Positions 604-4,723 of a stretch of 64,000 bases of DNA are shown one piece after another. The stretch spans positions 124,001 to 188,000 of the forward strand of contig JALDTO010000155.1 of the NCBI GenBank assembly GCA_023515725.1, in the 5' to 3' direction. The first letter of the stretch is position 1. Every line of letters starts with the position of its first letter. This DNA comes from Amoeboaphelidium protococcarum X5 (Eukaryota > Fungi > Aphelidiomycota). A program made the position numbers and the translations under genes. Below the pieces are notes generated by a model. That model saw only the letters and a program-made list of their open reading frames with translations. It was not told the DNA's origin and ran no database searches.

Positions 604-2220
604 ATGATGCGTATGGGTAAAAAACTTTTGTTACTCTGCTTTTACTCTGCAATGGTATAAGCAGAATAGAAACTGGAAAATGATGCGCCAATTAAGTGCC
701 GCCTGAGATCTGTTTCATCTATCAGCACATCATGTACCACTATTAGTGGGACTCCTCTGACTGTGAAAGTATTGTCTACAAGCTGTTCATCTGCTACTGT
801 CCATCGCACTAAACCTCCGGTGGTCGTGTCAACTCCTTGCTCAAGCTCTACGCTCACCACGGCCACTACTGGACATGTCACCACTACTTTGTCAGTGACA
901 CGTACAACCATAGCGATCTCTGCTCCCCAGAGTAAAACCTCACTTGTATCTACACCATGCACCACCTGTCAAAATTTGTCATCCTCCACCACTCGGTAAA
1001 CCTCTACTAGATTCCAAGTATAAAGCACGTCGTCTCCTTTTACTTCTCGCTTCACTTCAACATCGTCTACCTAAAAGTGCTCATCTTGCACATCCAGTCG
1101 TAGTTAGACTCGCTCCATGACATCCTCTACTACGTCATCTATTATAACAACTACTGCGATACCATCGAGATCATCTACAATGTCCTCTACTGTAACAACC
1201 ACTGCGACATCTTCTAAGTATAGTACACCAACTCCTGGTCCTCCACCTCCTAGCGAAAGACCTCCTAGTCCTACACCGCCTGGCCCTCCACCACCAAGCG
1301 AAAGGCCGCCTAGTGAAAGACCTCCTAGCGAAAGACCACCAAGCGAAAGACCTCCTAGCGAAAGACCGCCGAGTGAAAGACCTCCTGGTCCTTCACCTCC
1401 TAGCGAAAGACCACCAAGCAACAGTCCACCAACTGAACCTCCTTCTAGAGACCGCCCACCTAGTCCGCCGACATCGCCCCCTATCAGGCCTCCAAGTCCA
1501 CCGCAACCGCCTGCACCTGAAGCTCCTCCTCCCACAGATGGTTCCGAACCTCCTCTTCCTCCCCCTGGTACCCCTCCTCCTTTTCGTCCTAGTGCTTCAA
1601 AACCTCCTTCGAGTCCAAATCGTCCTAAGCGTCGTGATGCACCGCACCGCAAAGGGAATGGCAGTCCTCTTATATTTGATATAAACCGGGATGGAGTTGT
1701 GTCTGCTTAAAAAAATACCGGTATTTCTAAGGATCCTTTAAACCCTGATAAGCGGGATGGAGGTGCTGTGGATGGTGATAAAATGCTTGCAATGTCCGAC
1801 TTAAATGGCAATAATGTGGTGGACATATAAGAAGTGTTTGGCGACCATACTCTAAGCCCGTTTAGTAAGGAAGCGTACCACGCGGCCAATGGATTTGACG
1901 CGTTATACATGCTTGCTCTGGAGATGCAATCCATCCCATAATGTCAATTCTAGTTAGTAAAGAAGGACCATAACAGTGTTCTGGTATCTTTAATTTTTAT
2001 GAGAAAGTGTCTAAATCTGCATAATGTTCAGCTTGGCTTTATTAGTGACACTAACATCAGTAATCTAGAAGAACTGGGTGATGTTGATCAAGTTGATGTG
2101 ACTGATTATGTCAATACTCCGCATGATGTAAGAAATGGCGTTCTTCATGGATAGAAAGGATCTTTCTACTCCTAAGATGGTACTCAATTGAAAGTTGATG
2201 ATGTATGGTTCAGGAAATGA
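604..2220 (+). CDS. Secreted Ser/Thr-rich, Pro-rich protein with C-terminal FrpC self-processing-module-like Ca-binding domain (paralog 1, 538 aa)
   Basis: One frame from ATG 604 to TGA 2220 when TAR=Gln. Signal-peptide-like MMRMGKKLLLLCFYSAMVQA, KCRLR motif, S/T/C-rich region, PPSER repeats, then SPLIFDINRDG...DLNGNNVVD.EVFGDHT...ANGFDAL...LEELG...QKGSF..DG...DVWF. Confidence 0.85.
1291..1380 (+). repeat. Coding minisatellite, six 15-nt units encoding PPSER
   Basis: Degenerate units such as cctcctagcgaaaga and ccaccaagcgaaaga in tandem. Confidence 0.9.
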
Positions 2221-3109: not shown

Positions 3110-4723
3110 ATGCTTATGGGTCTAAAAAATATTTTATTGCTCTGCTTTAGTGCGACTTTGGTATTATCCGAGTTGAAATCTCCAACTGACGTCCCTGTAA
3201 AATGCCGTCTGCGATCAGTTGCATCAACCAGTACACCGTGCTCTAGTATGGTTTCTCTTACGGTCAAGTCAGTGTCAACAAGCTGTTCATCTACTTCTTC
3301 CAGTCACATTACTGCTCCCCCAGTTTTATCAACACCATGTCAATCGTCTAGTATTACTGTACCTACGACTGGATATCCTACCACTGCGACTTTTACGCGT
3401 CCATTTGGTATGACCTCCTCTTATCAAGGCTCGTCTAAATCCACTCCCTGTTCCACAAGCTAAAAGTTGACATCTACCATCACTACTCTAAAAACCTCTA
3501 CTAAGTCCTTGTCTTTACCTCTGAGTACCCCGTCGTCTATTACTACTTATGTCACTCAAAGCACATCTGCCACTGTGTGCTCAGATTGCTCGAACAGTCG
3601 GGGTTCGACATCCACCACAACTTTTATAACGTCTTTGACTGTAATGACGACTACATCTTCCTCTAAATAGTTGTATAGCAGTCCAACTCCTGATGCTCCA
3701 ATGACTCGCCCTCCACTTACACCGCCTCCTTAAATTCCTCCATCGTCTGGTCCTCCGAAAACTCCTCGTCCTCCAAGTGAGAGACCACCTAGCAATAGGC
3801 CTCCAAGTGAGGGACCACCTAGCAATAGGCCTCCAAGTGAGGGACCACCTAGCAATAGGCCTCCAAGTGAAGATAGACCGCCGAGAGAACCTCCATCTAG
3901 GAATAGGCCTCCAAGTGGCGACAGGCCACCGACTGACCCTCCGTCGAGAAACGGACCGCCTGGTCCACCACCTCCTCCGGAAACTCCTCCACCAACGCGT
4001 CCTCCTCCGCCACCGCCCGCACCTGAAAGCCCTCCTCCGCCAGTTAGTTTCCCTGCACCAAGACCTCTTCCGGGTACTCCCAAACCACCTTCTCCACAAC
4101 CTCTACCTGTGAAAAGAAAATCAAAGTCAAATGGCAGAGGCAGAGGAGGTGGATGTGGAAGTGAGAGTCCACTTGTATTTGATATGAATAGGGATGGAGT
4201 TGTTTCTGCCTCGAAAAACACTGGTATCTCAACGGATCCCTCAAATCCAAATTAACAAGATGGAGGTGCCGTAGGTGGCGATAAAATGCTTGCAATGTCC
4301 GATTTAAATGGCAATGGTGTGGTGGACATTCAAGAAGTGTTTGGTGATCATACGCTGAGTCCATTTACTAAGAAGCCATATCACGCAGCTAATGGTTTTG
4401 ACGCATTATACATGCTGGCTTTGGAAATGCAATCTATTCCAAAATGTAAATTCTAGTTAGTAAAGAAGGACCATAACAGTGTTCTGGTATCTTTAATTTT
4501 TATGAGAAAGTGTCTAAATCTGCATAATGTTCAGCTTGGCTTTATTAGTGACACTAACATCAGTAATCTAGAAGAACTGGGTGATGTTGATCAAGTTGAT
4601 GTGACTGATTATGTCAATACTCCGCATGATGTAAGAAATGGCGTTCTTCATGGATAGAAAGGATCTTTCTACTCCTAAGATGGTACTCAATTGAAAGTTG
4701 ATGATGTATGGTTCAGGAAATGA
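3110..4723 (+). CDS. Secreted S/T/P-rich protein with FrpC-SPM-like C-terminal domain (paralog 2, 537 aa)
   Basis: ATG 3110 to TGA 4723 in one frame with TAR=Gln. MLMGLKNILLLCFSATLVLS leader, KCRLR, ESPLVFDMNRDG...DVWFRK. Confidence 0.85.
3770..3870 (+). repeat. Coding minisatellite, three 30-nt units encoding PPSE(G/R)PPSNR
   Basis: cctccaagtgagggaccacctagcaatagg repeated almost perfectly three times, plus a partial unit. Confidence 0.9.

Follow-up and report, generated by a model that had tools for sequence, protein, structure and literature searches.

Four genes in a 64,000-nucleotide stretch of the Amoeboaphelidium protococcarum X5 genome (contig JALDTO010000155.1, positions 124,001 to 188,000 of the forward strand; hereafter, the window) encode secreted stalk proteins that end in a domain of about 180 amino acids. 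We found that this C-terminal domain is homologous to the self-processing module (SPM) found in FrpC and related bacterial RTX proteins in sequence, profile, and fold, as an original prediction made from the letters alone had proposed. The domain belongs to the SPM fold family yet fails a defining feature of clip-and-link chemistry, an Asp–Pro bond at its start: all copies in the genome have Ser–Pro or Cys–Pro instead. It is thus a eukaryotic Ser/Cys–Pro variant of a known bacterial module, and we found no earlier description of one in a eukaryote. The explanation that best accounts for the whole, and to which we give a little less than an even chance, is that native secreted stalk proteins acquired a bacterial SPM domain once and are processed at the Ser/Cys junction. 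The genes and their parts are as follows (positions in the window).

604..2220, + strand: gene 1, 538 amino acids (translation code 6), 12 in-frame TAA/TAG codons, TGA stop; in order, signal-like N-terminus, KCRLR (694-708), Ser/Thr-rich (S/T-rich) then Pro-rich stalk, SPM-like domain
1245..1412, + strand: stalk repeat of gene 1, 15-nt tandem unit in about 11 copies, encoding a PPSER-type Pro-rich stretch
1663..1668, + strand: Ser–Pro junction of gene 1, matching the position of FrpC Asp414–Pro415
1666..2217, + strand: SPM-like domain of gene 1 (locus L016), 184 amino acids
3110..4723, + strand: gene 2, 537 amino acids, architecture as in gene 1, KCRLR at 3200-3214
3770..3942, + strand: stalk repeats of gene 2, tandem units of 30, 48, and 60 nt, encoding a Pro-rich stretch
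4166..4720, + strand: SPM-like domain of gene 2 (L009) with its Ser–Pro junction (4166-4171)
16135..17481, - strand: gene 3, 448 amino acids, without KCRLR
16138..16692, - strand: SPM-like domain of gene 3 (L012) with its Ser–Pro junction (16687-16692)
37969..39435, - strand: gene 4, 488 amino acids, a divergent paralogue, KCRLR at 39328-39342
37972..38508, - strand: SPM-like domain of gene 4 with its Ser–Pro junction (38503-38508), 178 amino acids, without in-frame TAA/TAG codons

The domain and its bacterial relatives

The C-terminal segment of gene 4, which is free of in-frame TAA/TAG codons, served as the query for all searches and for the structure model, and genes 1–3, which contain in-frame TAA/TAG codons, were used as code 6 translations. 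Among 177,635 PDB sequences searched with phmmer, the segment matched the FrpC SPM (6sjw_A) with an E value of 2.3e-8, a similarity well above chance level, and the alignment spanned the full length of the chain (residues 66-241 of the query, 1-166 of the chain), beginning at the Pro equivalent to FrpC P415. A 23-sequence profile (A1) gave a similar value for the FrpC SPM (E 2.2e-8). The AlphaFold2 model computed on the A1 alignment had a mean predicted local distance difference test (pLDDT) score of 94.9, with 179 residues at pLDDT ≥90. Foldseek against the PDB returned significant matches to 6sjx and 6sjw only (E 1.5e-7 and 4.4e-7, template-modeling [TM] scores 0.56–0.59; the next match had E 0.49), and VIA-align ranked the same chains first, with Z 14.1 for 6sjw (root-mean-square deviation [rmsd] 2.9 Å over 139 residues), Z 12.4 for the precursor 6sjx, and Z 2.2 for the next chain. 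As the SPM fold was reported to be novel and without PDB relatives (PMC7078468), the structural match is specific. Gene 3 is identical to a database protein (P0298) that carries a precomputed PF26745.1 (SPM) annotation, as do other A. protococcarum proteins, and 29 of 30 matches in an ESM Atlas feature search were clusters with PF26745 on all members. When the domain was scanned locally against Pfam and NCBIfam, using a library that does not hold PF26745, only EF-hand matches below threshold came up.

The likeness to the modules of FrpC and FrpA (Neisseria meningitidis) and ApxIVA (Actinobacillus), represented by 6sjw, 6sjx, and PF26745, extends from the overall fold and end-to-end alignment to individual elements. 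These include the Pro-Leu start, the DxNxDG calcium site I, the EF-hand-like site II (DxNGNGxIDxxE-FGD/N), the NGF-AL helix, the LE-LG motif, and a C-terminal QxG...DG...D-x-W/L strand that holds the equivalent of D579. The domain motifs listed in the original prediction all occur, some of them in slightly different form in gene 4 (RNGFVAL, IEPLG, and FGNFT), and the FrpC motifs that it named agree with the SPM sequence in the PDB. The setting of the domain differs: in aphelids, it sits at the extreme C-terminus of a signal-peptide-bearing eukaryotic secretory protein, whereas in FrpC, a type I secretion substrate, it is internal and followed by RTX repeats. RTX proteins are marked by nonapeptide GGxGxD repeats and a type I secretion signal at the C-terminus. 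Pfam and NCBIfam found no HemolysinCabind or RTX match in the aphelid segments, and there is no RTX-type C-terminal secretion end: the aphelid proteins stop 0–11 residues past the domain and have a signal-like start.

To identify relatives, we ran an exhaustive HMMER search over 1.84 billion cluster representatives and retained 264 proteins at E ≤1e-3. Ranking below the aphelid proteins were approximately 100 proteins (E 1e-38 to 1e-14, 40–51% identical) that also carry the domain at their extreme C-terminus; most lack a signal peptide and have N-rich GNGNN-type repeats, and one is encoded on a 699-kb scaffold amid ordinary bacterial genes. Only at E 1e-11 and weaker did long proteins of the RTX type appear, in which the SPM is internal, and the hidden Markov model scores split sharply between the C-terminal group (>100 bits) and the RTX type (40–70 bits). 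Scanning GTDB with one genome per species turned up 59 loci, almost all of them in metagenome-assembled genomes (MAGs) labeled Melainabacteria, Gastranaerophilales, Caenarcanum, or "Cyanobacteriota." Among the 51 bacterial loci with a complete domain, which were the ones used in the tree, 36 came from MAGs of Melainabacteria/Cyanobacteriota type and the remainder from Muribaculaceae, Gammaproteobacteria, and Desulfobacteraceae or from MAGs without a label. The best structural neighbor in the ESM Atlas was likewise a Melainabacteria cluster (TM 0.91, rmsd 1.5 Å, 183 residues). The Melainabacteria proteins (from Gastranaerophilales, Caenarcanum, and others) differ from those of aphelids in having the N-rich repeats and no signal peptide in place of S/T/Pro stalks, and an additional DxDxDG-like loop at the place of DPSNP in the aphelid domains; the aphelids have also gained two conserved cysteines.

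With the RTX-type group as root, maximum-likelihood trees united the eukaryotic sequences in a single clade (98–99 in the Shimodaira–Hasegawa-like approximate likelihood ratio test) that has a long stem and is nested in the bacterial C-terminal subfamily. Its immediate sister is P0039 alone (support 92), a protein from a bacterial-looking contig. An old transfer of the domain from a bacterium to aphelids is well supported. The search hits included no named fungus, animal, or other eukaryote, which fits a single old transfer and disfavors broad vertical inheritance across opisthokonts. The horizontal acquisition proposed in the original prediction is thus borne out by the tree; its proposed RTX-associated source is not, the nearest relatives being C-terminal SPM-like domains, mostly from Melainabacteria MAGs, and not RTX toxins. 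The picture of the donor is weakened by two points: apart from the P0039 node, the deep nodes have 84–87% support, such that the donor can be named only as a member of the C-terminal SPM subfamily, mostly Melainabacteria, and part of the MAG labels are other than Melainabacteria.

The junction and its possible chemistry

FrpC cuts its Asp414–Pro415 bond through an attack of the Asp side chain on its own carbonyl, giving an anhydride, and the P415A mutant is cleavage-incompetent (PMC7078468); the D414A mutant shows neither cleavage nor coupling (PMC7846742). We scanned the A. protococcarum genome (23.6 Mb in 346 contigs) and found 27 domain-encoding loci (E 1e-126 to 2e-44). Directly before the junction Pro (position -1), 21 of them have Ser, 6 have Cys, and none has Asp; the Pro itself, at +1, is present in all 27 copies and in 152 of 155 family members. 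Across 154 aligned family members, position -1 is Ser in 116, Asp in 23, Cys in 11, Thr in 2, and Ala in 2, and never Gly, Asn, or Glu; positions -2 to -4 vary freely. At least 11 switches between Ser and Asp are needed on the tree. The -1 codons of the aphelid copies are AGY (11), TCN (10), and TGY (6), and the use of both Ser codon families plus the Cys codons linking them is a pattern classically noted at nucleophilic serines. Ser–Pro is the majority junction also among the bacterial relatives retrieved, with 61 of 87 C-terminal relatives having Ser–Pro and 24 Asp–Pro, and 31 of 34 RTX-type relatives having Ser–Pro, a ratio that describes the sequences nearest the aphelid query and should not be extended to the whole SPM family. 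Single MAGs encode both kinds of junction, for example, Ser–Pro in L041 and Asp–Pro in L033. Given that position -1 is limited in nearly all relatives to Ser, Asp, Cys, and Thr, each of which has a nucleophilic side chain, we infer that the junction does more than mark where the domain starts.

Other features of FrpC are retained in part. Calcium site I (FrpC D419, D421, D423, and G424) is kept as D-x-N-x-D-G and site II as an EF-hand-like loop, DxNGNG..D..E. The equivalent of D579 is nearly invariant (DDVWF) and that of D478 is Asp or Asn (FGD/FGN); in FrpC, D478 and D579 are ligands of the transient fifth Ca2+ at the cleavage site. With the invariant Pro, calcium sites I and II, and the D579 equivalent all kept, the domain is predicted to fold on Ca2+.

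For the chemistry, we tentatively favor autoprocessing driven by Ser or Cys through an N-to-O or N-to-S acyl shift, a reading suggested by residue conservation. Ca2+-driven folding would strain the Ser/Cys–Pro junction, and the -1 side chain would then act as the nucleophile and form an ester or thioester. Hydrolysis of this intermediate would set the 20-kDa domain free, and its transfer to another nucleophile would instead attach the stalk. Similar chemistry is known from the N-to-O/S acyl-shift domains (Hedgehog/intein Hint, SEA, GPS, and Nup98), which have a Ser, Cys, or Thr nucleophile at a conserved junction and an ester or thioester intermediate that is hydrolyzed or transferred. Their folds are unrelated to that of the SPM, and the parallel would hold at the level of conserved residues. 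Several observations weigh against autoprocessing by an acyl shift. Ser or Cys is unable to form an anhydride. Calcium sites III and IV of FrpC are not recognizable in alignments of this subfamily, the behavior of which may differ from that of FrpC, and the W451/W519 pair, the stacking of which stabilizes the FrpC fold, is not conserved, aligning to Ala and to residues of a Leu/Cys region. The Ser, Asp, or Thr at -1 could possibly be structural, for example, as part of an Asx/ST-Pro turn or as a calcium ligand, and this position is Ala in two divergent relatives among the eukaryotes.

Much of this evidence suits an alternative that we rank almost as likely as the acyl shift, in which the domain does not cleave at all and forms a Ca2+-stabilized globular knob that caps the stalk and binds a partner, such as the parasite cyst wall, the host algal wall, or another protein, with the -1 residue being structural. 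The absence of the catalytic Asp from every aphelid copy, the apparent loss of two of the four FrpC calcium sites, the absence of the Trp pair, and the two relatives with Ala at -1 would all follow, and strong purifying selection over the whole domain (see below) fits a binding surface. The structure model also places the -1 Ser within the confidently folded part. A junction that simply does not cleave should, however, tolerate Gly, Asn, Ala, Glu, and other residues, yet 152 of 154 family members have Ser, Asp, Cys, or Thr with repeated switching between Ser and Asp, and Cys is a poor calcium ligand and turn former.

It is improbable that a kexin- or furin-type protease frees the domain at dibasic sites just upstream. 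Pairs of KR, RR, or KK do occur within approximately 25 residues upstream of the junction in about 15 of the 27 copies, including genes 1–3, but gene 4 and all members of the L020–L027 subgroup lack them; basic or Gly-rich linkers often remain uncleaved, and such cleavage leaves the conservation at -1 unexplained. Still further from the data is the FrpC-type clip-and-link activity of the original prediction, in which an Asp–Pro bond is cut via an aspartic anhydride and the Asp is joined to Lys by an isopeptide bond. The shared fold, motif order, and invariant Pro speak for it, as does the Asp–Pro junction in approximately one-fourth of the bacterial C-terminal relatives; the activity needs the Asp that no aphelid copy has and without which, in the D414A mutant, FrpC neither cleaves nor couples (PMC7846742). 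The sequence contradicts this reading, and we regard it as very improbable.

A broader form of the acyl-shift reading would make Ser/Cys–Pro SPMs an unrecognized class of Ca2+-triggered autoprocessing modules, with aphelids using them to release their stalks or to ester- or amide-link them to the cyst wall or the host alga; we consider this unlikely. A loose parallel is the autocleavage of GDPH sites in the von Willebrand D (vWD) domains of mucins (MUC2 and FCGBP), where a mucin-type secreted protein has a self-cleaving X–Pro bond that can leave a reactive end for cross-linking. The vWD fold is unrelated and the chemistry depends on Asp–Pro, and the comparison is an analogy only.

We found no description of a eukaryotic SPM in the literature, in agreement with the original prediction, which knew of no such example, and no paper on a Ser–Pro SPM; a dual RNA-seq paper on A. 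protococcarum makes no mention of calcium, adhesion, or secreted proteins. To our knowledge, bacterial RTX proteins are the only ones for which this fold has been described. The FrpC-type chemistry is already in use as a protein-ligation tool (NeissLock), and Ser–Pro modules would have either a function other than clip-and-link or a second self-processing chemistry not yet explored. This eukaryotic SPM-fold family, clearly bacterial in origin and expanded to 27 copies in a green-algal parasitoid, is a clean example of how a close relative of fungi has put transferred machinery of bacterial surface proteins to its own use. Its members are also candidate molecules for the biology of the aphelid cyst, adhesion, or penetration, a field with almost no molecular knowledge.

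The gene family in Amoeboaphelidium protococcarum

The four open reading frames (ORFs) of the original prediction were all found in the window and are complete, each with a signal-like N-terminus, an S/T-rich and Pro-rich stalk, and the C-terminal domain. They contain 8–12 in-frame TAA/TAG codons apiece and are all terminated by TGA. Long TGA-bounded ORFs full of in-frame TAA/TAG codons (TAR) occur throughout the window, and the code in which TAR encodes Gln thus applies. Signal peptides were called by eye and with a simple hydrophobicity rule. The stalks consist of 34–38% Ser plus Thr and 13–24% Pro and are probably O-glycosylated. The KCRLR motif is present in genes 1, 2, and 4, as anticipated, and gene 3 has IKWLQ at this place; a basic cluster ahead of the domain, which the original prediction gave for all four genes, is found in genes 1–3 and is missing from gene 4. 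The domains (178–184 amino acids, ending 0–2 residues short of the stop) are 89–97% identical within genes 1–3 and 53–55% identical between these and gene 4, and the N-terminal parts are far more diverged (36–62% identity). Long Gly/Leu/Arg-rich ORFs lie antisense to the Pro-rich repeats (1104-1652 and 3581-4221, both on the - strand); we rejected these as genes and consider them by-products of the CCN-rich repeat.

All 27 ORFs of the genome have signal-like N-termini, and in 23 of them a KCR[LQ]R motif follows directly; this motif might serve in a disulfide or as a convertase site. The domain contains 2–6 TAR codons in every copy except that of gene 4, its GC content of 0.417 equals that of the genome, and the copies are located on large contigs, up to Mb-scale. 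The ratio of nonsynonymous to synonymous substitution rates (dN/dS) among paralogues is 0.03–0.20. Near-identical proteins are listed at NCBI as "hypothetical protein [Amoeboaphelidium protococcarum]" (e.g., KAI3650632.1 and KAI3637404.1), four of the database proteins retrieved (P0001, P0002, P0004, and P0005) carry A. protococcarum NCBI names, and related proteins are annotated by NCBI in two A. protococcarum assemblies. The TAR codons within the domains, the genome-like GC content, and the large contigs identify the genes as native, and the family consists of functional genes, with at least 27 copies under purifying selection. That they are instead bacterial contamination or decaying pseudogenes, for which the bacterial identity of the closest relatives could be cited, we reject given the TAR=Gln codons inside the domains, the TGA stops of all four window genes, the eukaryotic signal peptides and stalks, the large eukaryotic contigs, the low dN/dS, and the presence of related proteins in both assemblies.

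The contig of the window carries two arrays of the genes (C155:115475-162538 and C155:843195-896899), the second of which mirrors the first, with matching pairs being 88–97% identical; a further copy (L014) is located 8 kb before the start of the window. The paired arrays look like a large segmental or homoeologous duplication. The aphelid domains (L001–L027) have two conserved cysteines, or three in L022–L027, where the bacterial relatives have none, and the other eukaryotic subclade has a different cysteine pair (within MLAMCD and C[DN]LGF). The pairs probably reflect disulfides acquired independently for the secretory pathway.

A second aphelid lineage

The eukaryotic clade takes in ten representatives from outside Amoeboaphelidium, found in metagenomes and SRA assemblies. 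On the contig of one of them, P0047 (L029:81-5333), the gene for RPC2 is called in at least five pieces, presumably split by introns, and adjoins the gene for ribosomal protein L7/L30. This RPC2 groups with those of Paraphelidium tribonemae and A. protococcarum with 100/100 support, in a clade that is sister to Fungi; the gene may help to place the aphelid from which P0047 comes. P0026, which was found in the same run as P0047, adjoins genes for IFT80 and IFT122, and P0104 adjoins a Brr6-like gene. The ORF of P0026 (L089:612-2633) has 673 codons without any stop, indicating that its organism uses the standard genetic code. The encoded protein consists of a signal peptide, four tandem KCRPR motifs ([IVM]KCRP[RL]), an S/T-rich stalk, a poly-Pro stretch, and the domain. 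The whole arrangement is therefore older than the divergence of at least two aphelid lineages. The four motifs of P0026 parallel the single KCRLR of the Amoeboaphelidium proteins.

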